A stretch of 64,000 nucleotides of DNA from Macrostomum hystrix (GCA_950097015.1 CATNEN010000024.1:1550001-1614000); one strand, 5' to 3'; positions 2,486 through 60,265 are shown, numbered from the stretch's first letter. Numbers and translations: made by a program. The notes: generated by a model from the sequence alone, not told the origin.

Positions 2486-3615
2486 ATACCACGGACAGTG
2501 ATATCCATAATATTATGATACTATGATGAGAGCACACGGTCTTAAATTGAACAAAAAATCTCTTAGCGCATTCGATAGTAACAAATATGGAACCACACAA
2601 GAAGCTTTGTTCTCTGTGATGCATCAAATTTGTATTATTTTTAGTTCAATTTGGATTAGAGCAGCTAAACTAGAACAGTACAACATTGAGTAAGAGGTTA
2701 AATATGCCTTGAGCTTTGAGCTTCAGGGAAAATGTGAGAAACTGATGTTTGTCCTTCATGGATTAAAACTGTAGGCAAAACAGACTAAGACAGACTAAGA
2801 ATCTCAGGCCCTCCATGTCGAGCCCAAAGGCGTTCTAATTAGTACAAAAATATATTAAAGTATACTAATAGTAGTGTATATAAAGCTGATAATAAATAAA
2901 TCTAGTAAAAATACATCGCACATCTAGACCGTAGTTATGCCGAGTGTGACAGCAAGCAGATCTGCTTGTTTACGCTAAACTGAAAGCAAAAAACGACACA
3001 ACATTCGATGATCCGCTGTGAGCAACACAAGATCACAATATAATTAAATAATAAAAACAGCCGCATTTTATAATTGTATTGCGATAACTAAGACGCTAGT
3101 TATCGCAATTTATGCGCTAATAACGAATAAAAATCCTGAAAAAACGAAAAAAGGACAAGAAATCTTAAAACCCAAGGACAAAAGACAACGGTGAAAGAAA
3201 GAAGTTTCAGCGAAACTAAAGCCAAGCTGAGAATAGTGGATATAATTATTCTCTACAAAAAATCCACAGGCTGAAGCAGGGATCTCTGGATAAACGTGCA
3301 ATAGGAAGAAATGGCTGTTGAACCCGCTAAAGTTTTCAAAGTAGATTTTTAACGGCCGATGGCATTAGAGAATGTTAGTTGGTTTCTTTTTAGGAAAAAT
3401 AGAAAATTTTCTTGTTGCCAACCGTATTTCTTTTGGTCTAGGATTCAATAGCTAAAGTTAAAATGATTCGAAGAGTGTGGGCTTCAGAGTGCAGGACAAC
3501 AAAACTCACCACAAAAGTAGATTTTCTCCAAACTTAAAACAAAAATCATCGCCAAAAGTATCAGAACAGCTCAGAGATCATCTAAGATCCTAAGCAAGAG
3601 CACACAAAGCCGCGA

Positions 3616-6600
3616 TCAGAAAGGCTTGGCGTGATCATCCGGCCACTGATAGGGGTCCGGCACAATTTCCGGATAGTCGGTGCGGTACATCCGTTCGGAG
3701 ATGTAGGCGCGCAGGTCATCAGGGGCCTGGCCAATGCCGGCTAGGCCGTGTCTCAGGGCGTGCTCGGCCACCTTGACGGCGATCTCCAGGCTGACGGACT
3801 GGATATCGGACAGTGGCGGGTAGAGACGGCCCTCGGCCAGGTGAGCATCTGTCACCAGGCCGGCCAGGGTCTGGGCGGCCCGGAGGAACACCTTGTCAGT
3901 GATTGGCCGGATGCCGCAGGTGACAATAGCCAGTGCGACGCCGGGGAAGATGTAGGCGTTGTTGCCCTGGCCGGGATGTAGGACGGTGCCATTGGGCAGT
4001 GTCACCGGTTCGAATGGGGAGCCTGTGGCGGCGGGCGGAGCGTCACACGTTTATAAAGCTTAAAAAACAACTATTTTTGTTCTATGGAAGCAAACTGGGG
4101 ATCTGGAACTGAGGAGGCAAAGCTGGGGATCTGGAACTGTGGAGGTAAAGCTGGGGATCTGGAACTGAGGAGGCAATGCTGGGGATCTGGAACTGAGGAG
4201 GCAAAGCTGGGGATCTGGAACTGTGGAGGCAAAGCTGGGGATCTGGAACTGTGGAGGCAATGCTGGGGATCTGGAACTGAGGAGGCAAAGCTGGGGATCT
4301 GGAACTGAGGAGGCAAAGCTGGGGATCTGGAACTGAGGAGGCAAAGCTGGGGATCTGGAACTGTGGAGGCAATGCTGGGGATCTGGAACTGAGGAGGCAA
4401 AGTTGGGGATCTGGAACTGAGGAGGCAAAGCTGGGGATCTGGAACTGAGGAGGCAATGCTGGGGATCTGGAACTGAGGAGGCAAAGCTGGGGATCTGGAA
4501 CTGTGGAGGCAATGCTGGGGATCTGGAACTGAGGAGGCAAAGTTGGGGATCTGGAACTGAGGAGGCAAAGCTGGGGATCTGGAACTGAGGAGGCAATGCT
4601 GGGGATCTGGAACTGAGGAGGCAAAGCTGGGGATCTGGAACTGAGGAGGCAATGCTGGGGATCTGGAACTGTGGAGGCAAAGCTGGGGATCTGGAACTGT
4701 GGAGGCAATGCTGGGGATCTGGAACTGAGGAGGCAATGCTGGGGATCTGGAACTGTGGAGGCAAAGCTGGGGATCTGGAACTGTGGAGGCAAAGCTGGGG
4801 ATCTGGAACTGTGGAGGCAAAGCTGGGGATCTGGAACTGAGGAGGCAAAGCTGGGGATCTGGAACTGAGGAGGCAAAGTTGGGGATCTGGAACTGAGGAG
4901 GCAATGCTGGGGATCTGGAACTGAGGAGGCAATGCTGGGGATCTGGAACTGTGGAGGCAAAGCTGGGGATCTGGAACTGTGGAGGCAATGCTGGGGATCT
5001 GGAACTGAGGAGGCAATGCTGGGGATCTGGAACTGTGGAGGCAATGCTGGGGATCTGGAACTGTGGAGGCAAAGCTGGGGATCTCGGACGATGGAGGCAA
5101 AGCTGGGAATTTAAGGATCTAGAACTGTGGAGGCACAGCTGGGGATTTAGGGATCTGTAACTTTGGCGAAGGCGAAGACAGCTTACCCGAGACGAACACA
5201 GCTCTGCCGTCGGTGTACTTGTAGGCCTCCTCAGCCGTGCACTCGGCCTGTGATGTCGGGTTGCTCAGCGCGAACACAATCGGCTTATCGTTCAGCTGGC
5301 CCATCTCGCGGAGCAGCTCCGGCGTGAATGCGCCGGGGACGGCCGCTGCGCCAATGATGCCTGTGGGCTTAATAAGCCGGACGCACTCCAGAAGGCTCTG
5401 GGTGTCAGGCAGGTCCTTGGCGAACTCCTGCTTGTGACCAGATAGGCCGGTGCGAGTCTTGGTGATCAGACCCTGTTGGGATAACACACTTTGGCAATGA
5501 ACAGGTGCTGAGTCTTCTCTGAAAATACTCAATGGGTAGTCTAAGCTCTCAGATTAAACACCTGAAATCCCACAGTGAAACACTCAGATTAAACACCTGA
5601 AATCCCTCAGTGAAACACTCAGATTAAACACCTGAAATCCCACAGTGAAACACTCAGATTAAACACCTGAAATCCCTCAGTGAAACACTCAGATTAAACA
5701 CCTGAAATCCCACAGTGAAACACTCAGATTAAACACCTGAAATCCCACAGTGAAACACTCAGATTAAACACCTGAAATCCCTCAGTGAAACACTCAGATT
5801 AAACACATGAAATCCCTCAGTGAAACACTCAGATTAAACACCTGAAATCCCTCAGTGAAACACTCAGATTAAACACCTGAAATCCCTCAGTGAAACACTC
5901 AGATTAAACACCTGAAATCCCACACTGAAACACTCAGATTAAACACCTGAAATCCCTCAGTGAAACACTCAGATTAAACACCTGAAATCCCTCAGTGAAA
6001 CACTCAGATTAAACACCTGAAATCCCTCAGTGAAACACTCAGATTAAACACCTGAAATCCCATAGTGAAACACTCAGATTAAACACCTGAAATCCCTCAG
6101 TGAAACACTCAGATTAAACACCTGAAATCCCACAGTGAAACACTCAGATTAAACACCTGAAATCCCACAGTGAAACACTCAGATTAAACACCTGAAATCC
6201 CATAGTGAAACACTCAGATTAAACACCTGAAATCCCACAGTGAAACACTCAGATTAAACACCTGAAATCCCACAGTGAAACACTCAGATTAAACACCTGA
6301 AATCCCTCAGTGAAACACTCAGATTAAACACCTGAAATCCCTCAGTGAAACACTCAGATTAAACACCTGAAATCCCTCAGTGAAACACTCAGATTAAACA
6401 CCTGAAATCCCTCAGTGAAACACTCAGATTAAACACCTGAAATCCCACACTGAAACACTCAGATTAAACACCTGAAATCCCTCAGTGAAACACTCAGATT
6501 AAACACCTGAAATCCCTCAGTGAAACACTCAGATTAAACACCTGAAATCCCTCAGTGAAACACTCAGATTAAACACCTGAAATCCCATAGTGAAACACTC

Positions 6601-34208: not shown

Positions 34209-43749
<9,541 letters not shown>

Positions 43750-45109: not shown

Positions 45110-46049
45110 TCAGCTCCAGTCGCCGTGCCTCACAGCCCAGGCGAACTCATCGAAGCTGAGCAATCCGTCCCTGTCTGCGTCGGCCATGTGCACCATCTGC
45201 ACCGCCTCATCCACGGTGAGCCGCACCCCCAGACGGCCCATGACCTGGCAGAGGTCTCCGGGCGTCAGGAAGCCGTCAACATCGGCGTCGAACAGTTCAA
45301 AAGTGGCCAATAGATCTTTATCCTCATCAGAAGTGCGCCAGAGCTGCGTCAGCAGGTCCAGGAAGTCGGCTCTGCCAATGTTCTCCCTTGGCGCGGAAAA
45401 AATTCCTGAGAGTAGATCCTGCAGGTGATGACGAATCGGTTGTCTCGATGGTCTGCATGGTCTCCATGGCAATGGAACCTACCTATACCTATAACCTAGC
45501 AGATTAACTGACTGGTTCAAGGATAGCTTTACAGCCTGTGTTGATCGATAGTAATAATATTTGGTGGATGGCTGTGGTGACTAGTGATTGTCGTTTGAAA
45601 AATTCTCAAGGAAGTAAAGTTCACGTCAAGCACCCAAGCCTTCTGTCAACGGCTTCGCCCCCAATAAATGTGGCCTCGCCGCGGAATCGAGCTCTGGGAC
45701 CTTAGTGCGAGAGGTGCCTTTTCAGGTGCCTTGCCTGTAGTGCCATAATCGTATATGAGAATGGTAAAAACACTATCTGCGGCACCTGTAAGTACAATGT
45801 AATTACCTGCAGCTGAGCCTCAGACACGATAAAGCCCATCATCTGCAGAACGCTGGGCAGCTCCTTGACCGGGATGCGGCCGCGCGCCTCCTTGTCAAAG
45901 ACGGCGAACGCTTCGAAAAGTTCGTCCTGCTGATCTATGCTGAGCGTGCGCAGCTGATTCTGGACGGTCTCGACGGGCTCGGCAAAGAGCTCTGCCTGCT
46001 CCGGCTGCTGCAGCTTTGATTTTGCACCGGGCTCGTCAAATGAAGACAT
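45110..46049 (-). CDS. Calmodulin-like EF-hand protein, 2 exons, 183 aa
   Basis: Exons 46049-45807 and 45418-45110 (CAG|GTAATT ... CTGCAG|GAT, phase 0). EF loops: DKEARGRIPVKE (non-canonical), a degenerate EF2, DADVDGFLTPGD and DADRDGLLSFDE. About 35-aa N-terminal extension. Confidence 0.9.
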
Positions 46050-47004
46050 CACAGTGCAAGCACAATCTTGGGCCTGTTAAACCTCAGATACGAGAGACTG
46101 CGGAGTAGCTGAAGTAGGCTCTTTCGAGTTTACCTGTGTAGTCGTCTTGTCCTCATGCTGATATGCATTTAAGCGTCTATATGTGCACTCAGTTTGCAGA
46201 CGGAAGGCCGGCCGGTAGCGACCTCATTACAGCGGCAAGTCCTCCACCTTCTCGCTTGGTGGTGGCGGCCGCCTGTGGTGGTGCATGGCATGTCTCTCTC
46301 TCTCATTATGTGCTCGCGGCTTGTTTGCGTCAGTCAAACTTTCGCTTTCATTTCTCATTTCTCTTTCTCTCCTTGTCAGTAATTTCTCTATTAACCTGGG
46401 GGCGCGCAATTCGGAGCTAACATTGGTCTTCAATGTTCTTAAAAAGCAGAGAAAGTGCAGGAAGAAACTGCAGCAAATGAAGAAAAACTCCTGTTCTGCA
46501 ATCTACCGAACTTATCAAAACGTTGTTATGCCAATTTTAGATTTGTAAATGACTCCTGTGTTAGGCATAAAATTATGCAAGCTAATATGCGCTTAATGTA
46601 TTCAGAGGCCAAGGCTAGAACTCACGATTTGTGCATTCTATTTTGAACACCAACTTTATTCTGGTAAATAAGAAAATGGTAAATGAGAAAAATATAATCA
46701 CTTTTAGTTCTTCGACGGGCTCAATTAGCTACGACTTTTGCTACTTTAAGATATAGAAAATAGAAATTGAGAAATAATCATTTTTAGTGCAAAAACGGGT
46801 GTATATTCGGCTGTCCGGCTGCTGTGTGTCTCCCTGCTGGATGCTTTGTCGGTGCACTTTTGCACGCTGCTCGGCAAGGTTTGCACCATCGTGGCAGCAA
46901 GTGCTCGGCACAATGGCAGGGTTTTACTGTTTTGAACTTGACAATGTTTTTATCCAAGACACAATAAGTATGATAATAATTTTAAGCATTTTTTGCCCCA
47001 ACTG

Positions 47005-47932: not shown

Positions 47933-48475
47933 ATGGCAACCTACGGCATGCCTTATCCTAGTTACCCACCCACGCAGCCGCCACCATACGGCAATCAGTC
48001 AAGCCGGCCGGTTCAGGTATGCCTGAGCTGGGTGCCGGCCTCCAGTGGCCAACTTCCGCAACGGGCTTTGCAGGCCGGGGTGCAGCAGACGGGCGGCACC
48101 CTGAGCGTGTTTATCAGCCGAGCCCGCTTCGGAAACGAGCTTATCCCGGCCAAGTTGGTCCAGAGTCATCCGCACGTGTGCGTGCCATACGGCGGCAAGG
48201 AGCATTGCATCCAGCAATACGAGGTACTGTGCGACACTGGCCTGCCCTGCTTCGGCTGCGGCTTCGCTTGGGCCCCCTGCCAGGGCTTCAACATTCCGCC
48301 AAATGCCATTGTTGGCGGCCACACCGCCAATAATGAGCCGCTGTACATTGCCAAGGGATTTGTGAATGGTGACGCTGTGGTTGGCAAAGTGTACGGGCCG
48401 CACCAGTGCGCCTACTTCCCCTGGGGCGGGGTTGAGCACACCAGCAAGCAGTTCGAGATTCTAGTGGCCCAGTGA
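47933..48475 (+). CDS. DM9-repeat (DUF3421) lectin-like protein, 180 aa
   Basis: Two DM9 repeats (WVPASSGQLP..A..G...FISRA...LIPAK...VPYGGKE..YEVL; WAPCQG.NIPPNAIVGG..NEPLYIAK...VGKV...YFPWGGVE..FEIL) and a Pro/Tyr-rich N-terminus. Probable 5'UTR intron (donor GTAAAT at ~47811, acceptor just before the ATG). Confidence 0.9.
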   Translation: MATYGMPYPSYPPTQPPPYGNQSSRPVQVCLSWVPASSGQLPQRALQAGVQQTGGTLSVFISRARFGNELIPAKLVQSHPHVCVPYGGKEHCIQQYEVLCDTGLPCFGCGFAWAPCQGFNIPPNAIVGGHTANNEPLYIAKGFVNGDAVVGKVYGPHQCAYFPWGGVEHTSKQFEILVAQ

Positions 48476-49929: not shown

Positions 49930-51897
49930 TTCGTAACATATAAGCACCCCGACAGGTGGTTCAGGCGCACCAGCAGGAGGCCGCCATCGTTCAATGAATT
50001 CCCGCCGGACGTAGCGCTGCACTAGACCCCGGAGCAGATGGAGCCGCCGCCACCGCCCGCCAGAGGACTTCGGCTGCCAGCGCCTCCGCCGCTGAAGCCG
50101 CCGCCTCCGCCAGCAGTTCCCGCATTGTAGCTACCGCCACCTCCTCCGCCAAAGCCTCCAGTGGCGCGCTCGTTGGCATGTGCGGCGACGCCACCGAGCC
50201 AGCCGGCTCCCAGGCCACCATTGATGTTGAGTCCAGAAGGCCCGAAGCTGCCGGGTTGCCGGGTTGTAAGCGGCTGTGCCGACGGTGTTGGTGCCGTTCA
50301 CGCCGGCCGATCCGTTCAGGCTTTCAGTGTTGAGCGTTGATAGTTAAATAAAAAATAAACTAGCTAATCGTGTTTAACAGTACGAGTATAAAGATCACGT
50401 GTTTCAGGTATTTCAAATACCCAGATTTGTATTTTTATTTAATTGTTAATTTTCCCTTTTTTGAACTAGGGATTCGCCATAGAGGTTTAATGGCGATTCG
50501 CCATTCGCCATTCGCCATACAGAGCAATTTCAGCTGTCCTTGTCACCAGGGTCTCTGACAAGAATCGCTGAATATCTCGACGATGCTGACTCGGATGGCT
50601 TTGAAAGTTGGCTCATGGTAAAGCGCGGAAAATTTTGAATTAGATGATGGACTTTTACGAAAATCGGTCATTTGGTTTGGGAGCTATCGTAAAGTGGGCA
50701 GTGGGTATTTGAAATACCGTGGTCTTTCTATTGCAAAATACTTCAAAATAGGCTTTTCTATTGTGAGGAATTTTGAGGAATGGGGTCAATTTGACCATCA
50801 CATGATAAGGCTTCCAATCTGAATGAGATTCATGCCTTTCAAAGGGGGAGTGTTACTTTTTCTGATTAAATCTATGGCAACATATGCGTGTACTGCAGGA
50901 GCAAATGAACTTGCCATTGAATCCCTGAGAGCCACCTCCGCCACCTACAGCAGCCAGGTACAACAGGTTGTCCGATCGGTCCGGTACACAAAGGTGCCGC
51001 CACCGCCTCCAGATCCAGCGGTGGAATCCACTTGGGTGGCGTCGCCGTCTCGCTGGCCGATGACGATGCTGATCTGTGTCCCAGCTGTCAGGTTGAAGTT
51101 TCCTCCGATGTACGCGCCGAACCCGCCAGTGTAGACAGGGCTGAAGGCTGGGTTGGTGCGGCCGCCTCGAGCACCGAACGCCTCCATGCGGTAGCAGCCG
51201 GTCTGGTTCACCGTCAGGCTCTGGACGGTTCCACTCGCACCAGTGCTGGTGTCTGAATGGCATCGTATTTAACAGTTTTGTTGTCGTCAACCGGAGATCT
51301 TTCTTCGTGAATATGTGAATACACGCCCTGCTCAATCAACCAAACGCGCAATCTTACTCTTATAAGTAGAGTACGTGAAATTAAGCTGACTTCTCAAGTC
51401 AGCTTAATTTCTCCAGGTGAAAGCCACCTCGTCGCTTGAGGCATTGAATTCGTTAGATGTGCCGCAGATGGACTTAAGCAGTACACACATAGCGGTCTCA
51501 ACCCAGGCCAACCTACAGACTCCATCTTTGAAGGCTACCGCAGAGCAGCCCTCATATCTGCCCCTGTAGGCGCACTCTGAGCTGCTCCGTACTCCGTGCA
51601 ACGTCCTCACCGTTTTGCAGATGCTCTTCTCCAACACGGTGATGGTGGAGCCTGGGGACGCTTGCGTCAGTTGGAACTCCTCGCCAGAACTCGTGATCTG
51701 TTCGGCTACAGCCAGACCGAGAACTCCTATTTCATAGTGATACGGAACAGATGTTCAATGTGCAAATGTATGGTAAATATGTAAATAAAATCAATACACC
51801 ATATAATAGACGAACCGCTAACAAGCTACTATTTTTATTAAAGATAATGTAATTGGCAAGTGTTACCTAAGATAAGAAGGCCTCTCAGAAGTAGCAT
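49930..51897 (-). pseudogene. PAN + ALK/LTK-type glycine-rich-domain gene, copy A (disabled)
   Basis: Exons 51897-51867 (signal MLLLRGLLILG), 51726-51358, 51252-50915 (GC donor) and ~50321-49930. In-frame TAA at 51406-51404, +2 frameshift at ~50975, two deletions and a TAG in exon 4 relative to copy B. Confidence 0.85.
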
Positions 51898-53263
51898 TGT
51901 TATGTTGCCTTTTCTTTCTTACGGATTTTTCTCCCATCCACTGTCGCCATCTTGGCTGCTTCCTGTTTAAAGACAGGGCAAATTCCCCACTGTTTGTTGC
52001 CAGGCAAGCCAGTTTTGTCACTAGGGTGACGCCAAGACGCAGTCCTGGCAGCCACCCGTGCCTGTTCATAGTTGCATACACAGCAGCCTGAGTCCGTGTC
52101 TCAGTCAAAGATCACATGAGGTCACATGCACTTAATGCAGAAGTATAGGAAGGATGAGTCTACTCAGTAGAAAATAAGAAGTTTCTGAGAGGGGCCCAAT
52201 CCTACGGACAAGGTTCCATCGATTTTATCGTTTTTGCAGATGCCGGATCTAAGACAATTAACCTGTGGCATTTAGGTTAGCTGTGTAAGTTCTGCATAAA
52301 CTACATTTTACGAGTGTATATTAAAAAAACGAATATCAAGCTTTGAAATAAGAATTTATACATCATTCTTTGTGTGTAATTCTGAGAATTCATTGTCTCT
52401 AAGAAAAATATGAGTCGTGCTCAATTTGTTGTATATAAACACTGAGCACAATTATTTAAATGAGAATACTTAGGAACCTACAAGTTTAGGCAGGACTTCA
52501 TGACTGGATGTCAACTGCTAAGCCTGTGTTCTATTCAATTATTTGAGTGCTCAATTATTTCATTTTACTCTTCTACAATAGGCCGGCAATTGTATTTTAG
52601 GCAAGCAGTGATTCTGCGACTCATGCCCGCACAAATGACTCAGAGACCATTGTTAGAACTTTGTTACGATATCCGCGCAAATTTAGTTGCTAAAACCATT
52701 ACGTTTTATTGATTTGAATTATCTAAAACTGCAAAACTACATTTTGCAAAAACTACAGCAGAATTTAAGATAGTTACTGGCTCTACTTAATGGCTCTAAT
52801 TAATAGAAAGTACAAAGTATTATTTTTCAGCTAAGAAGTCAGGAAAACCTTAAAAAAATAATTTAAAGACTAAGGCGGAAGGCCTTTTGTTTACGAAGTT
52901 GGAGTGGCAGCGAAGTTAGTGTGCTGCATGGCACGTATATTTATATTTACAGCAAGCGCGCGAGCGAGATAGAGGGGCCTAGGGAGGTGCGAAATGGTGG
53001 CGTGACTTCTCACACCCGGCTTAGCGAGCCGGCTGGCTGGGTGCACCAACCCCCACCTCAACTAGACTGAGGTTGAGGGGTTTGGGTGCGGCTGCACTGT
53101 TGCTGGCCGGTCGCGTGTTGACTGTCCGCCACAAGACTTAATTTTCCTAACTCTACACGATTAGGCATGTTTTACTCTCGTTAATCGATACAAGTCCGAA
53201 TTTCTCTTTCAGTTTTATCTGTGCATTAAAAACTGCCTTTCAATCCCTGGACCGATGGTCACC

Positions 53264-55116
53264 TCAGACGCAGCTGCCAGTGTACATCAGGCGCAAGAAC
53301 AGCAGGCCGCCATCACTGTACGAGTTTCCACCGGACACAGCGCTGCAATCGAGCCCGGAGCAGAAGGAACCCCCGCCGCCACCCGCCTGGGGAGAAAAGC
53401 TTCCAGCGCCGCCACCGCTGAAGCCTCCGCCTCCGCCGGCTGCTCCGCTTTGGTGGCTGCCGCCGCCGCCTCCGCCGAAGCCACCGACGGCGCCTTCGTT
53501 GCCGTGTCCGGCGACACCGCCGACCCAGCCCTGGACGAGGCTGCCGCCGCGATCGCCGTAGCATGTGCTGGCCCTGGAAACGGCAGCTCCCAGCCAGCCA
53601 GCTCCGAGGCCGCCTCTGAAGGAGCTGGTCGAGGGTCCGTAGCTTCCGGGCTGACCGTTTGCTCCGCCAAATCCAACGTAGGAGGCCGTGCCGACGGTGT
53701 CGGTGCCGTTCACTCCGGCTGATCCGTTCACACCTGTAGTGTTTGCATGGGAAAACACTTTAGACTCGATGCATTAACTACTTGATCAACTCGTGTCCTC
53801 CAGAATGACTATAGGAATAGCAAGACTGCGTTCTCATTTGGGGATGAAGCTAAAAAATTCAAAGCAAAATAAAATTTCTTGTGTATGCTAATATATTAAC
53901 AGAGATGTTTGACCCCACTGGCGTCATGATTGTCTTATTAAGTAGCTTTGAGAAACACCTTACTACGAAATTTTATCTCTGCGAATCGCGGCCTTACCAT
54001 TGAATCCAAGCGACCCGCCACCGCCACCTCCAGCAGCCAGGTACAGCAGGTTGTCAGAGCTCCGGTACACAAAGGTGCCGCCGCCGCCGCCAGAGGCGGC
54101 AGTGTTGAGTGCCTGATTGGCGTCAGCGCCCCGCTGGCCGATGACGATGCTGATCTGTGTCCCAGCTGTCAGGTTGAAGTTTCCTCCGATGTACGCGCCG
54201 AACCCGCCAGTGTAGACAGGGCTGAAGGCTGGGTTGGTGCGGCCGCCTCGAGCACCGAACGCCTCCATGCGGTAGCAGCCGGTCTGGTTCACCGTCAGGC
54301 TCTGGACGGTTCCACTCGCACCAGTGCTGGTGTCTGAATGTCATAGCGAATAGAAAAGGGTTAGTAAAACAAGGCACTGATGCTGTAGCACTTCAAAATT
54401 AAAAAAAAATTGTTTCAGCGCCTACTTTTATAGACAGTGGAGGTATAGTTCAGTTGGCTCTTCCAGTCGGTCCAAATAAAGGCGGCTTCGTCATCGGTGG
54501 TGTTGAATTCGGCACAAACGGAGTGCGCCAGAAGATACATTGAAGTCTCTACCCAGGCCATCCTGCAGACTTCGTCTTTGAAGGCCATGCCGACGCAGCC
54601 TACGTAGCTGCACCTGTAGGCGCACTCGGCGCTGCTTCGAACGCCCTGCAGTGTCCGAATCCTCGTGCAGACGTTCTTCTCCAACACGGTGACGGTGGAG
54701 CCAGGGGAGCCATCAGCCAGTCGGAACTCCTGACTGGTGCTTAGAGATAAATCGGCCATTGCCAGATCAGGCAGACCTGAAGTTTTTGGGCAAACTTTGT
54801 TGAATGATATTGCGATTTGAATAAATGCCCCGCTTTGTCACCTAGCCACTATACTAGCTCGCAACCTTCTCAGCTGTAAACCCTGTCATGGCCTTTCGTT
54901 GAGTTTAGTCAATTCAATTTTTTTATAACACGTCAGCGGCTCTCAATGGTATTTTTAGAGGCAGAATAGAAAAATATCATGATGGACTTAAAGCTGACTT
55001 GAACTTATTAAATGGATCATCTATTCAGATGATAAAATTTGTTCAGAAATAAATGCGAAGGTATTCTTACCGGATAGAAGCAGACAGGACACAGTTTTCC
55101 ACAGGATCAACAACAT
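53264..55116 (-). CDS. Secreted PAN/apple-like + ALK/LTK-type glycine-rich-domain protein, copy B (intact, 400 aa)
   Basis: Exons 55116-55071 (MLLILWKTVSCLLLSG), 54776-54426, 54333-53998 and 53733-53264, all phase 1 and GT-AG (1203 nt). PAN-like SAECAYRCSYVGCVGMAFKDEVCRM. GRD motifs GCYRMEAFGARGG, GAYIGGNFNL, ISIVIGQRG, GGGGGTFV, LYLAAGGGGG, GGFGGGGG. No TM segment or kinase. Confidence 0.85.
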
Positions 55117-55988
55117 ATTGCTTTTTCCCTTTTCCAAGGTCTCACCTAGTATTTTAACCGCAGCAAAAGCCTCACTTATGTATCATAATGAAGCTAGCAA
55201 CCGTCGTCATGGTAATGCGAGTAAACAAAGCTACACAATAGCTAGCTGCCTTGTCACCGCGGGTCGGGGCATCTGGGTCTCGCTGAGTGCGCTCAGTGCG
55301 GCAGTTGCATACGAGATTTAACGTCTGCTGCCCACTTGGAAGCAATTCAAGCGAACAATGTCTTTAACAGCCAAGAGAGCCAACATAGCCTAAGCAAAGC
55401 TTTTCTTGTGAGCTGAGTTCTAGCTCTGTGAAATGCTAAATAGTTTTCGTCAGGTTCTCGGTAAGCAGCTGCTAGAAGAAGACGACACGCTTGGGAAACT
55501 GCCTTCTTGTTTTTTCTGAGCATCCGAAGACAATGGGAAACTTTTGACTGATGGGTTGAAGGAGCCTTAAAAAATAGAGGTTCTCCTGTGCCTTCTCCAC
55601 CAGTTTTACCCAGAAATGAATCGCCGACAAACAGGGAAGATCACTAGAGGGATGCCACTAGTCTATGACGTTGCAACTAAACAGGCCTTCTAAATAGGCA
55701 CCGTATGCTGTAAACTATCAGGTAGAGTCCCGCTGCGCTTGTTCCAACAGGTGCGACAGAGCTTTTACTTGACCATGAATTGAAGCCAATCGATATGAGG
55801 CCCATATAATTTTAAAATAAAGCTATACAGAAAGTTATGTTCTGTGAAGATTAATTAAAATATAGTAAACGAAGCTTCTAAAGTTTTCAGAAAAAGTCTG
55901 TATATTAAGATCCGATCCTCTGGACTACCACTGGCTTGATCAAGGCTCAGCAGTCAGCCACAGTTCATTAAAGACAACAGCTTAATCG

Positions 55989-57508
55989 TCAGTCGACCGT
56001 CGTGCGAGTCAACGTTTCCGCCAGATGTACCAGCGCACCAGCGAGCCCGGAGCAGAAGGAACCCCCGCCGCCACCCGCCTGGGGAGACCAGCTTCCAGCG
56101 CCGCCACCGCTGAAGCCTCCGCCTCCGCCGGCTGCTCCGCTTTGGTGGCTGCCACCGCCGCCTCCGCCGAAGCCACCGACGGCGCCTTCGTTGCCGTGTC
56201 CGGCGACACCGCCGACCCAGCCCTGGACGAGGCTGCCGCCGCGATCTCCGTAGCATGTGCTGGCCCTGGAAACGGCAGCTCCCAGCCAGCCAGCTCCGAG
56301 GCCGCCTTTGAAGGAGCTGGTCGAGGGTCCGTAGCTTCCGGGCTGACCGTTTGCTCCGCCAAATCCAACGAAGGAGGCCGTGCCGACGGTGTCCGTGCCG
56401 TTCACTCCGGCTGATCCGTTCACGCCTGCATTAAAAAGAAATATATAAATCTTTAATTTCAAATTTTAACTTCTTTAATAAGTAACCTGTCGAAGGCTGT
56501 ATATACTAAAAAACAAGTGAATGACAGAGTAGGGAATAAGTTAATAACCGTTGTATCCAATAGACCCGCCACCGCCACCACCAGCAGCCAGGTACAGCAG
56601 GTTGTCCGAGCTTCGGTACACAAAGGTGCCGCCGCCACCACCAGAGGCGGCAGTTTTCAACGTCTCGCTAGCGTCACCGCCCCGCTGGCCGATGACGATG
56701 CTGATCTGTGATTCAGCCGTCAGGTTGAAGTTTCCTCCGATGTACGCACCGAATCCGCCAGTGTAGACAGGGCTGAAGGCTGGGCTGGTGCTGCCGCCTC
56801 GAGCACCGAACGCCTCCATGCGGTAGCAGCCGGTCTGGTTCACCAGCATGTTGAGCACACTGCCACTTCTGCTTGTGCCTGAGCCTGGAAAAAGTTTTTT
56901 ATAGAATCTCATGAAAAAGTTGTGGAAACTGATTTTTAGTAAGTCAGTGTTAAAGCTTCGAGGTCACTGTCCATTTTTAAACCAAAAATTCACATAGTCA
57001 CACAGCCTCACTATTGAACGCAGTCGTAAGACGCGAAGCCGCAGCGACCCGACTGTCAAACTCGGTGGCACGCAGCAGCCGCTGCGTCTGATTGACTGTG
57101 AAGTGTCGGTCTTGCCAGCAGCTCTCGGTAGCAGTGGCTGCAGGCGTCAGTCGAAGCAGCTTGCAGATGCCGCTGATCATGTCGTGAGCCAGGACGTCGC
57201 AGCACGAGGAGCAGTCGACGCCGCAGCAGCTCAGGATGCAGTCGGCCTCGGACCAGACGCCGATTAGTTCGGCCAGCTGGCTGCAGCTGGAGTCGCTCAG
57301 GCTGATTTGTGAGGCTGATCGAAATGTGGCGCGGCAGTCGGACTGAGAGGTCAATGGTTCGATTTTCTCCAAAATGTGCAGGACTGAAATGAAATAGGGC
57401 AAGAACTCAAACATTTTCAAGTGAATAAACAAAATTAAAAAATTAGACAAGCTTTACACTCCAGCGCATACCAAAGGCAAGCAATACTTTGAACTCCAAA
57501 ATCTTCAT
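55989..57508 (-). CDS. PAN-like + ALK/LTK-type GRD protein, copy C (C-terminal frameshift; altered protein, young pseudogene or assembly indel)
   Basis: Exons 57508-57472, 57383-57012, 56884-56549 (weak donor GTTATT) and 56425-55989. The sequence homologous to B's C-terminus (CAGTSGGNVDSHDGRLTIKLLSLMNCG, stop at 55954) continues in another frame after ~56040. Confidence 0.72.
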
Positions 57509-58116
57509 GACAAAATGTAACAAACTCGTTGATTCCGCAATTTTTTTAACCCAAGCCGGCAAAACCGTCTGCTTTTACGAGCGTAAAGAAACCAGCAAAA
57601 CAGAAGCCTGAGCAGAAAGCCGCAGCTGCTTCAGCACAAAACTGAAAACTAGCCATCGAACCCGAGTCTATTCCAGACAGCAAACAGAGAGCAAAAACGT
57701 TTCACTGTGTCCTGACTTCTTCGTATTGCTGTCTAGAAAGTACTTTATGGTGGCAGTTTTCGCCAAGACCCATTGAATAGCCTCATGGCGCTCCGGAGGT
57801 CTGTCTATGGGGAGTCTGTGGCATCTTTGTTCCGCTGCGCTGCTGAGCCAGATGAGCCAGGTGGCAGCTGAAGTCATTTCCATTGTTTCCAGTGACTGCC
57901 CCAGCTATTGTTTGCTAATTGCTTCTCAGCTCTTCTTCAAGCTTTCCTTGTCAGGTGCCCCAACTCAACACGTGCGCATCCGATCCGACACTTAAGCCTG
58001 CATGCCTGCCTGCACAGGCTCAACGATCGATGATGGAAGGCCAGGTAAGGAGCTCAAGACTTGGCTGTCTGACAATGACAAAACTCAATGTGGGCTAAAT
58101 ACTGGATTTGCCACAG

Positions 58117-58880
58117 CTGTGGCTGTGACTGTGGCTTTGGCTGTGGCTGTGGCTGTGGCTGTGGCTATGGCTATATGGCTGTGGCTATGGCTGTGGCTGT
58201 GGCTGTGGCTGTGGCTGTGGCTGTGGCTGTGGCTATGGCTGTGGCTGTGGCTGTGGCTATGGCTGTGGCTGTGGCTGTGGCTATGGCTGTGGCTGTGGCT
58301 GTGGCTATGGCTGTGGCTATGGCTGTGGCTGTGGCTATGGCTGTGGCTGTGGCTGTGGCTGTGGCTGGGGCTATGGCTGTGGCTGTGGCTGTGGCTGTGG
58401 CTGTCTGTTTCTGTGGCTGTGGCTGTGGCTGTGTCTGTTTCTGTGGCTGTGGCTGTGGCTGTGGCTGTGGCTGTGGCTGTGGCTGTGGCTGTGGCTGTGG
58501 CTGTGGCTGTGGCTGTGGCTGTGGCTGTGGCTATGGCTGTGGCTATGGCTGTGGCTATGGCTATGGCTGTGGCTGTGGCTGTGGCTATGGCTGTGGCTGT
58601 GGCTGTGGCTATGGCTGTGGCTATGGCTGTGGCTATGGCTGTGGCTGTAGCTGTGGCTATGGCTGTGGCTGTGGCTGTGGCTATGGCTGTGGCTGTGGCT
58701 GTGGCTGTGGCTGTGGCTGTGGCTGTGGCTATGGCTGTGGCTATGGCTGTGGCTGTGGCTATGGCTGTGGCTGTGGCTGTGGCTGTGTCTGTTTCTGTGG
58801 CTGTGGCTGTGGCTGTATCTGTTTCTGTGGCTGTGGCTGTGGCTGTGGCTGTGGCTGTGGCTGTGGCTGTGGCTGTGGCT
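58117..58880. repeat. (GCTGTG/GCTATG)n hexanucleotide array, ~127 units
   Basis: Direct reading; the poly-VA, GC, WL and SH ORFs are by-products. Confidence 0.97.
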
Positions 58881-60265
58881 AAACAAAGCTATCTATCACG
58901 CTATACTACGCCGTAACCATCTAAAACGTGTCTGCCTGTCAATCTGGTATTACAGTCTACCGCCTGATCCCTGAACTGATATTTGCATATTCTATATCTG
59001 CTTTCTCGAAAAGTTCCTTGTTAGACTACTGTGAGTAGAAATAAAGATGATGCATTGCAAATAGTCCATGAAACATAAAATAAACGAAAATCAAATCGTA
59101 AGTACAACCTCCATAGCCTGATGCACGTTGCCAGTAAATGAATTAAATAGCAAACTTTTTATCATAGTTTCATCACAAACCATGATTTCACACGTAGGCT
59201 TTCGTTAATTAAAGCGATGAAATAACAGGTTTAAACTTACAAGCATATGTTAAAGTACGCATGTTCGCTCGTTCTTGTGAAAGAATCGAAGAGCAAAACA
59301 TGAAAAAACACAAATAAAAAACTTGTTTTCGCAGAAAGTTTTTTAGATTGGAGTAAAATTGAGAGTTATATTACCACTTTTTACTCTTTTTTTCTAACTC
59401 GGTCTCAGCCTTAGAATCCGCAGGTACAATTGCTACCTGGTTGTCAAGGCTTGTCAGGAAGCAAGGAGAAGGCGACAGGAAATTCCCGCACAACTGAATC
59501 GCTGGCAGGTGCGAGACAGAAACAATGAGCGGGAGCAAGCTATGATGAAAGAAGAGAGACATAGCGAGTGCATTATTGACGCAGACAACTTGTTTCCTGT
59601 TGTGCTCATGCAATGTCCCATGCAAGCCAGAAAGCACTAACAGAGGCTCTGGACAGGCTCTTCAAACTTGGCTTCCGGAAGTGTCCCGTTTTCCCATCGC
59701 CCACCAACTCGCGTTAGGCGCGCTAGCCCGCGGAGCCTATAGCGACGTCCAGCAATGCGCTCCAGCAATGCGCCAATTCAGCGCTAGAGAGTGGAGTGGG
59801 TGGAGGGGCCGGCCTGAATTATTCCCTGCTGCGACGGAAGCAGCAAGGCGCGGCAGCTTGGACGGGATGGCAAGAACCGAGAGAGGATGAAGAGAGAGAG
59901 GGACCTGAGTGGGCGATTACCAACCAGTCAAGACAATGGGGAAAGCTGGGGCTGAGGTGAGAAGAGTTGCTCATGGGTAGGCAAGAAGATGTCAAGCCAG
60001 TACTCCATGAAATTCTGGGGACCGCCGTCTGTGTCTAATGAGGCTGCAGCGGTTGTCCAGCCTCCCCTCAGTCTCACTGGTATCGTCTATTCACCAGCAG
60101 GAACCACTCCTCTTTGTCTGGAAGTCCCCCAGCATTCACAATTGATTTTGCCTCCCCGTGTCGCACTCTGCGGCCGTAGCGTCTTATAAAAGCGGCATCT
60201 CCAGGGGCTCCGACGGAACAGACGGGTCGGCTGACGGACCCCGCTTGCATCTCTTCCGTCTTCGA

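Follow-up and report, generated by a model that had tools for sequence, protein, structure and literature searches.

A partly decayed cluster of apparently secreted, kinase-less genes with an ALK/LTK-type glycine-rich module in Macrostomum hystrix

A stretch of 64,000 nucleotides from Macrostomum hystrix (GCA_950097015.1, CATNEN010000024.1:1550001-1614000; hereafter the window, which is contig C24:1,550,001-1,614,000 of a 220-Mb Macrostomum assembly) holds three related gene copies, here called A, B and C, all co-oriented on the minus strand and spanning positions 49941-57508. The explanation that fits the locus best, and that we consider highly probable, is that such genes encode secreted proteins of two modules, a cysteine-rich head followed by a full TNF-like plus glycine-rich (TG) module, that copy B and a paralogue outside the window (D) are intact, and that the glycine-rich domains (GRDs) of the copies are kept alike by gene conversion. 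The TG module is the ligand-binding region of the ALK and LTK receptors, and as such it is known from work on cancer and on development. The locus in the window is a small and partly decayed cluster belonging to a large Macrostomum family, with a birth-and-death turnover that has left one fresh and one old casualty.

Gene structure and predicted products

Gene models were obtained by combining three-frame translation, a three-way DNA alignment of the copies and a scan for phase-1 donors. A plan of four exons with phase-1 introns throughout, shared by three co-oriented copies, had been described in the initial annotation of this DNA, and reading frames, splice sites and DNA alignment all agree that it is real: a signal exon is followed by an exon for the Cys-rich head and by two exons for the TG module, and the introns of copies B and C have GT-AG borders. 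In copy B, exon 1 (55071-55116, minus strand, as are all exons of the cluster) consists of ATG plus 15 codons and 1 nt before a GTAAG donor in phase 1, and its peptide is hydrophobic and signal-like (MLLILWKTVSCLLLS). Exon 2 (54426-54776, both ends in phase 1) encodes a head with six Cys that is probably of the PAN/apple type, exon 3 (53998-54333) the first half of the TG module (PF12810, E = 1.6e-11, 45.1 bits), and exon 4 (53264-53733) the second half with its polyglycine runs and final strand, followed by the stop. The joined exons amount to 1203 nt and read as one uninterrupted open reading frame (ORF) of 400 aa. Copy C has its exon 1 at 57472-57508 (ATG plus 12 codons and 1 nt, again hydrophobic, MKILEFKVLLAF), a ten-Cys head in exon 2 (57012-57383), the first half of the TG module in exon 3 (56549-56884; PF12810 E = 2e-10, with a weak GTTAT donor) and the second half, which carries a +2 frameshift, in exon 4 (55989-56425). 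Copy A, a pseudogene, occupies 49941-51897, with exons at 51867-51897, 51358-51726, 50915-51252 and about 49941-50320. There is no additional family member within the window; paralogue D, which is intact, about 405 aa long and equipped with a head of the B type, lies 505 kb from the cluster at C24:2,109,049 (locus L003, G000:C24:2107549-2110875, exons 1079-1127, 1499-1870, 1973-2308 and 2566-3031).

The products appear to be secreted and devoid of a kinase, as far as can be judged from their predicted sequences. The N-termini of all four copies, D included, are hydrophobic (11-residue hydropathy of 1.8-2.4), and there are many Cys and 6-7 N-glycosylation sequons. Beyond residue 30, the best 19-residue hydropathy in B, C and D is 0.9-1.3, i.e., there is no membrane helix, and Pfam scans of the copies returned no match to an EGF-like module. 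A tblastn search of the window with a tyrosine-kinase domain of this genome gave a best E-value of 1.0, while a genome scan with PF07714, in which 130 of 862 candidates were scored, reported no match in the contig stretch of the window. The stop codon of B is located 12 residues past the last conserved strand of the TG module, the same place being used in D and in the ancestral frame of C, and when the M. lignano relative P0013 (described below) or coral proteins are aligned, the alignments extend to the C-termini of these proteins or stop just short of them. The earlier statement that transmembrane and kinase exons are missing is therefore upheld by the stop right after the TG module, the lack of a hydrophobic 19-mer and the lack of a kinase in the window. 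It is extremely improbable that the genes form only the 5' portion of a longer receptor gene with membrane and kinase exons at a greater distance. UniProt automatically names some M. lignano members 'receptor protein-tyrosine kinase', a name that derives from the GRD alone, since the relative P0157 (A0A1I8I3R0) has no kinase domain; moreover, a stop codon follows the module immediately, the next gene copy begins 1.3-2.2 kb downstream and kinase-like sequence is absent from the window.

Homology of the module to ALK and LTK

Exon 3 of every copy scores above the gathering cut-off of Pfam PF12810 (24.5 bits), with 45.1 bits in B, 41.5 bits in C and 39.1 bits in A. Exon 4 alone has no Pfam match, but it is matched at 8.6e-40 by a family profile that was built on a 58-sequence alignment of matches from the exon 3 search (a protein search with exon 3 of B, which returned 2523 cluster representatives) and from word searches. 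Against copy B, this profile reached 1e-89 over positions 12-343 of 350 and ran without gaps across both exon junctions, which supports the splice model of B as well. Against the human ALK ectodomain chains it gave E = 3e-24, covering chain residues 33-312 of 315, with further matches to LTK (1e-19) and to C. elegans SCD-2 (3e-12). Single-exon phmmer searches against PDB sequences found no ALK match, so that the family profile was needed.

The closest complete relative is P0013 from M. lignano (A0A1I8GEH1, 404 aa), which is 51% identical to B over 274 aa. Its AlphaFold model has a predicted local distance difference test score (pLDDT) of around 90 in the GRD, and in a Foldseek search against the PDB its only significant matches were ALK and LTK (E = 5e-11, probability 1.0, TM 0.57). 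Because the profile spans the ALK chains and the model of this relative matches ALK/LTK, the module of B and D, as judged from profile and modelled relative together, is the complete TNF-like plus glycine-rich supradomain, beyond mere glycine repeats. The GRD that had initially been recognized as ALK/LTK-type can thus be regarded as a true homologue of the entire TG module. In copy C the supradomain is not complete: the profile match ends at position 327 of 350 (343 in B) and the closing strand is gone.

The likeness to ALK/LTK (PDB 7LS0, 7MZY, 7NWZ and 7NX0; 7LIR for SCD-2) comprises the whole TG module with its five polyglycine runs and the closing strand. The differences are nevertheless considerable, as ALK and LTK have a MAM/LDLa region, an EGF-like module, a membrane helix and a kinase that the Macrostomum proteins lack, while the latter, unlike ALK/LTK, have a small Cys-rich head in front of the TG module. 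Identity in structure alignment amounts to about 21-28%, and more than 100 copies in Macrostomum compare with one or two of ALK/LTK.

Nature of the cysteine-rich head

The head of B contains six Cys, the number typical of apple-type domains, with the spacing C-x13-C-x3-C-x4-C-x8-C-x17-C, whereas that of C retains these six and has four more. The initial annotation had called the head of C barely alignable and richer in Cys, which proved accurate: ten Cys stand against six, and when aligned as DNA the heads of B and C reach an identity of 0.61, which is the value of shuffled sequence. Heads of the B type occur in the genome in B, A and D only; nothing else in the genome matches the head of C, which neither Pfam nor the ESM Atlas recognizes and which gave P = 0.002 in an hhalign comparison with B-type heads. 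As four core Cys are invariant or nearly so across 20 heads (A-D plus 16 from other loci of the genome), all heads can be considered one domain type.

The core Cys of the heads align with the Cys of coral PAN_1 domains. With a model of the B head (mean pLDDT 48.8, about 75 in the core), the top eight among 48,161 chains in VIA-align were all PAN/apple domains, at Z = 4.1-4.9 for what is a low-confidence model, with plasminogen, HGF, SML-2, kallikrein, factor XI and the MANEC domain of HAI-1 as the top matches. Foldseek likewise placed the PAN domains of HGF and plasminogen on top (E 0.2-1), and the nearest ESM Atlas clusters were PAN (0.92). Among the M. lignano relatives, P0003 passes the Pfam PAN_1 cut-off (23.5 vs. 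21.4 bits), and UniProt calls A0A1I8HRN4 and A0A1I8GD17 'Apple domain-containing protein'. Taken together, Cys framework, fold matches and language-model matches agree that the head is probably PAN/apple-like, although it lacks formal Pfam membership. Of the PAN-like Cys-rich module proposed at the outset, the Cys-rich head stands and its PAN-like character is probable, while a Pfam PAN match is missing in the copies of the window. With PAN/apple domains (plasminogen and HGF N-domains, factor XI, prekallikrein, SML-2, TgMIC4) the head shares the C-x3-C...C...C framework and, in its predicted fold, would share the core of strand, helix and hairpin, a structural likeness that is weak (Z 4.1-4.9), derived from a low-confidence model and unaccompanied by a sequence-profile match. 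A match of the head to Tako8 was discarded, as it had no significant stretch.

When the four sequences of the B-type head were used as an hhalign profile against PAN heads, the result was not significant (P = 0.37); a profile of the 20 heads reached P = 4-7e-6 in the same comparison, driven by the Macrostomum member P0003, and found no match among PDB sequences. In searches with Pfam PAN, one of the 20 family heads reached E = 0.0043.

Some results count against the overall explanation and have to be set beside the evidence above. The heads of A, B, C and D have no Pfam PAN match (PF00024/PF14295) at E <= 0.1. The head model is poor (pLDDT 49) and its fold matches are weak (Z < 5; Foldseek E >= 0.2). 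The coral PAN heads alone, compared with the family head profile, give P = 0.045 (0.26 in the reversed control), so that homology between the heads of corals and those of the window is weakly supported. Finally, word searches with P0013, the P0157 head and whole P0157 retrieved, as close relatives, only M. lignano predictions and no near-identical protein; since the databases had no near-identical protein of this species, expression, splicing and secretion are predictions.

Decay of copies A and C

At least six lesions mark copy A as a pseudogene. Its exon 2 has an in-frame TAA at the end (51404-51406), its exon 3 carries a +2 frameshift at about 50975-50980 with a stop after it, the donor at 50913-50914 is GC and the acceptor of exon 4 is out of phase. 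Within exon 4, there are a second frameshift near 50260, a deletion of 23 codons (69 nt) and a TAG at 50022-50024, ahead of the last strand.

The joined exons of copy C read as 393 aa. Relative to B, there is a net gain of 2 nt at about 56038-56042, between the "GL" codons and the next Cys, in a short GCTGGT repeat with no homopolymer. The product consequently ends in 18 unrelated residues; the last ~25 residues are replaced, and the last Cys and the last strand are gone. The ancestral frame is still open, reads CAGTSGGNVDSHDGRLTIKLL... and arrives at a stop (55954-55956) that aligns with the stop of B. The change is either recent or an assembly error; if the insertion is real, copy C has lost the closing strand together with a Cys that belongs to a conserved pair.

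Could all three copies be intact, with the lesions introduced during assembly? This would be easiest to accept for C, which differs by a single 2-nt change downstream of which the ancestral frame has stayed open, yet that insertion does not lie in a homopolymer but in the short GCTGGT repeat, and A carries its six or more independent lesions, including two in-frame stops and the 69-nt deletion. For copy A such a reading is in practice excluded, and for the cluster as a whole we judge it improbable. The "tandem triplet of genes" that had been announced for this locus is accordingly a triplet of copies, in which B alone is intact, C is frameshifted and A is a pseudogene.

Gene conversion and past selection

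Synonymous divergence (dS) differs strongly along the genes. Between B and C it is about 1.4 (saturated) in the head, 0.32 in exon 3 and 0.030 in exon 4, and between B and D 0.85 in the head, 0.058 in exon 3 and 0.185 in exon 4, i.e., exons of the same gene pair differ more than ten-fold. A and B share every one of the first 198 nt of exon 3, A being otherwise 23-30% diverged, and exon 4 of A is 77% identical to that of B. Neither introns nor flanks can be aligned better than shuffled sequence, with the exception of intron 3 of B and D (81%). The nearest partner thus switches exon by exon among A, B, C and D, and this mosaic of divergence points to gene conversion among the four copies, beyond a mere stronger constraint on the GRD. 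Judging from these sequence comparisons, the likeness of the GRDs in neighbouring copies is largely concerted evolution, due to local, recent and patchy gene conversion that reached even pseudogene A, and the heads and introns are free to diverge. Between paralogue D and B, sequence is exchanged from exon 3 through to exon 4.

These results bear on two earlier statements. GRD exons had been described as near-identical, which is correct for exon 4 of B and C (dS 0.03) and for the 198 nt at the start of exon 3 in A and B and does not apply elsewhere (exon 4 of A, 77%). A family design in which variable heads sit on a constant scaffold is not supported, as the constancy comes from gene conversion and the GRDs of the family are only about 40-60% identical.

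The ratio of nonsynonymous to synonymous divergence (dN/dS) was 0.17-0.39 in the heads of A, B and D and 0.3-0.5 in the GRD exons, which indicates past purifying selection on these heads, with no overall sign of positive selection. The same values speak to the suspicion that the family is decaying and that nothing in the cluster, not even B, still functions. Damage to two of the three copies is in its favour, and gene conversion could temporarily keep a dead copy looking intact; however, B and D each retain a full ORF and canonical splice sites, and their heads are un-homogenised (dS 0.85) and still show a dN/dS of 0.39, with 0.17-0.20 for the heads of A/B and A/D. We consider this suspicion unlikely to be right, to about the same degree as that of a locus with three intact copies.

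Family size and distribution

The genome contains at least 109 PF12810 GRD loci, a lower bound, as B and C themselves were outside the scored candidates. A sample of 20 GRD loci across seven contigs had the two-exon GRD without exception (20/20). In 17 of them, a head ORF with the pattern C-x3-C-x(3-7)-C-x(6-16)-C was present on the same strand within 1.8 kb upstream (controls: 3/20 antisense, 8/52 background tiles), and two more had the head farther upstream, so that 19/20 carry a head. GRD identity across the family is about 40-60%. Much larger assemblies of such loci than the cluster in the window exist on contig C1, where dense tandem GRD arrays at about 2.03-2.11 Mb and 9.13-9.58 Mb comprise a dozen or more matches each.

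Close relatives in the databases are exclusively predictions from M. lignano, with up to 59% identity. P0157 aligns with B over 280 aa at 59% identity, and its head is of the B type (35% identical, E = 1.5e-11). Together with P0013, A0A1I8HRN4 and A0A1I8GD17 it belongs to the same family and has the same architecture as the copies in the window; these entries come from another species, however, and bear automatic names only ('PE-PGRS family', 'receptor protein-tyrosine kinase'). Kinase-less proteins with PAN_1 and PF12810 are also found in public databases for the corals Stylophora, Porites and Pocillopora (P0189, Stylophora pistillata, 456 aa; P0204, Porites harrisoni, 450 aa; P0180, Pocillopora verrucosa, 536 aa). 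They resemble the window copies in the order of modules (signal, PAN, TG, stop), in size and in a GRD that is 46-48% identical to that of B, but their heads pass Pfam PAN_1 where those of the window fail, and some coral members insert EGF domains. Proteins combining EGF and GRD occur in Acropora, Oculina and Nematostella, and 'loricrin-like' names are in use in Acropora and Nematostella. Even bacteria have such a module, at the C-terminus of proteins about 400 aa long (P0053, P0091, P0128, P0133), where PF12810 is 50-53% identical to exon 3 of B; these proteins start with a prepilin methylation-motif N-terminus and a pilin-like domain instead of the signal peptide and Cys-rich head of Macrostomum. 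Some further proteins are far longer (P0001, P0002, P0005 and P0012, 2000-3000 aa) and contain five to seven GRD copies, P0001 with EGF modules and a weak match to the membrane segment of the insulin receptor in addition.

The architecture is therefore present in public databases and uncharacterised. The initial annotation knew of no description of it; with M. lignano and coral entries and at least 109 GRD loci it is not unique, although all of these proteins are uncharacterised and our literature searches found no paper studying the PAN+GRD architecture or a stand-alone secreted TG module. In a sea-anemone proteome study (PMC13514124), 'Gly_rich' and 'PAN_1' appear in abbreviations only, and a Nematostella matrisome paper (PMC12549020) contained nothing relevant.

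Other features of the window

At 47933-48475 (plus strand), 1.5 kb from pseudogene A, a DM9-repeat gene consists of a single ORF of 180 aa (Pfam DM9, E = 3.9e-37); its N-terminus is rich in Pro and Tyr and lacks a hydrophobic segment. This gene had been mentioned initially as a neighbour of the cluster; it does exist, and nothing links the two. Two EF-hand (calmodulin-like) exons (45110-45472 and 45702-46052, minus strand) and a copine exon (42166-42552, plus strand) are located upstream of the cluster. At about 58050-58900, a simple repeat of ~0.9 kb gives rise to spurious ORFs of 170-300 aa in several frames (WLWL.../AVAV.../HSHS...), and at 62431-63738 (plus strand) an open frame of 435 aa is made up of a ~26-aa repeat (KLSSSRLENYPPPDRKIILLQTG), either a minisatellite or a repeat protein.

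Functional interpretation

We propose that the products would enter the secretory pathway and become N-glycosylated, that the PAN/apple-like head would have a glycan or a protein as its binding partner, and that the rigid polyglycine lattice of the TG module might provide a second surface for binding or self-association. Rather than acting as signalling receptors, the proteins would then be part of mucus, matrix or gland secretions and serve there in recognition, agglutination or adhesion. PAN/apple domains have a record of glycan or protein binding. Because of this record, the secretory features, the pilin-like use of the module in bacteria and the arrangement in tandem birth-and-death clusters, extracellular binding (recognition, agglutination, adhesion) is by analogy the most likely of the functional readings, with a chance that we put slightly below even.

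The idea that the proteins are soluble decoys or traps capturing what an ALK-type receptor would bind, suggested in the initial annotation, found no support and is very unlikely for a family with more than 100 members. It would make sense of a complete ALK/LTK ligand-binding TG module without a kinase, but paralogues in such numbers and with very different heads are unlike a decoy for a single ligand, the identity to ALK/LTK is only about 21-28% compared with 46-48% to the coral PAN+GRD proteins, and the same module sits on pilin-like proteins of bacteria, where an ALK ligand is absent. Furthermore, no ALK-type receptor gene was identified, and the sole pair of neighbouring GRD and kinase genes that was checked turned out to be two separate genes. 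The pair in question is at C38:10.78 Mb, the best PF12810 locus, with a kinase 14 kb downstream; it was rejected as a true ALK because the GRD belongs to a separate PAN-like+GRD gene, downstream of which there are unrelated genes and a tyrosine kinase of the cytoplasmic type (L026). The PAN-like+GRD gene itself (L025, G000:C38:10777000-10786999) has its head at 2403-2828 and its GRD exons at 3711-4151 and 4596-5105. It is situated just downstream of ORFs (92-1305) that, read by eye, look like a transposase of the Tc1/mariner type.

To the picture of the family the window contributes a clean gene model of an intact member (B), a case of birth-and-death turnover and an apparent constant scaffold that could be traced to gene conversion. 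A flatworm genus that can be worked with in the laboratory and has more than 100 apparently secreted versions without a kinase also offers a way to learn what the polyglycine fold does outside receptors. It is possible, if doubtful, that the ALK/LTK module arose outside receptors, as an offshoot of an old and widespread family of stand-alone modules for extracellular binding, which bacteria carry on pilin-like proteins and which corals and flatworms carry behind a PAN head. Macrostomum would in that case have enlarged the family to more than 100 genes, a diversified repertoire of recognition for immunity, for mate or gamete interaction or for adhesion, in which neighbours swap the effector module through gene conversion and heads diversify. 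The flatworm and coral relatives also provide a route to ask where the ALK ectodomain originated.

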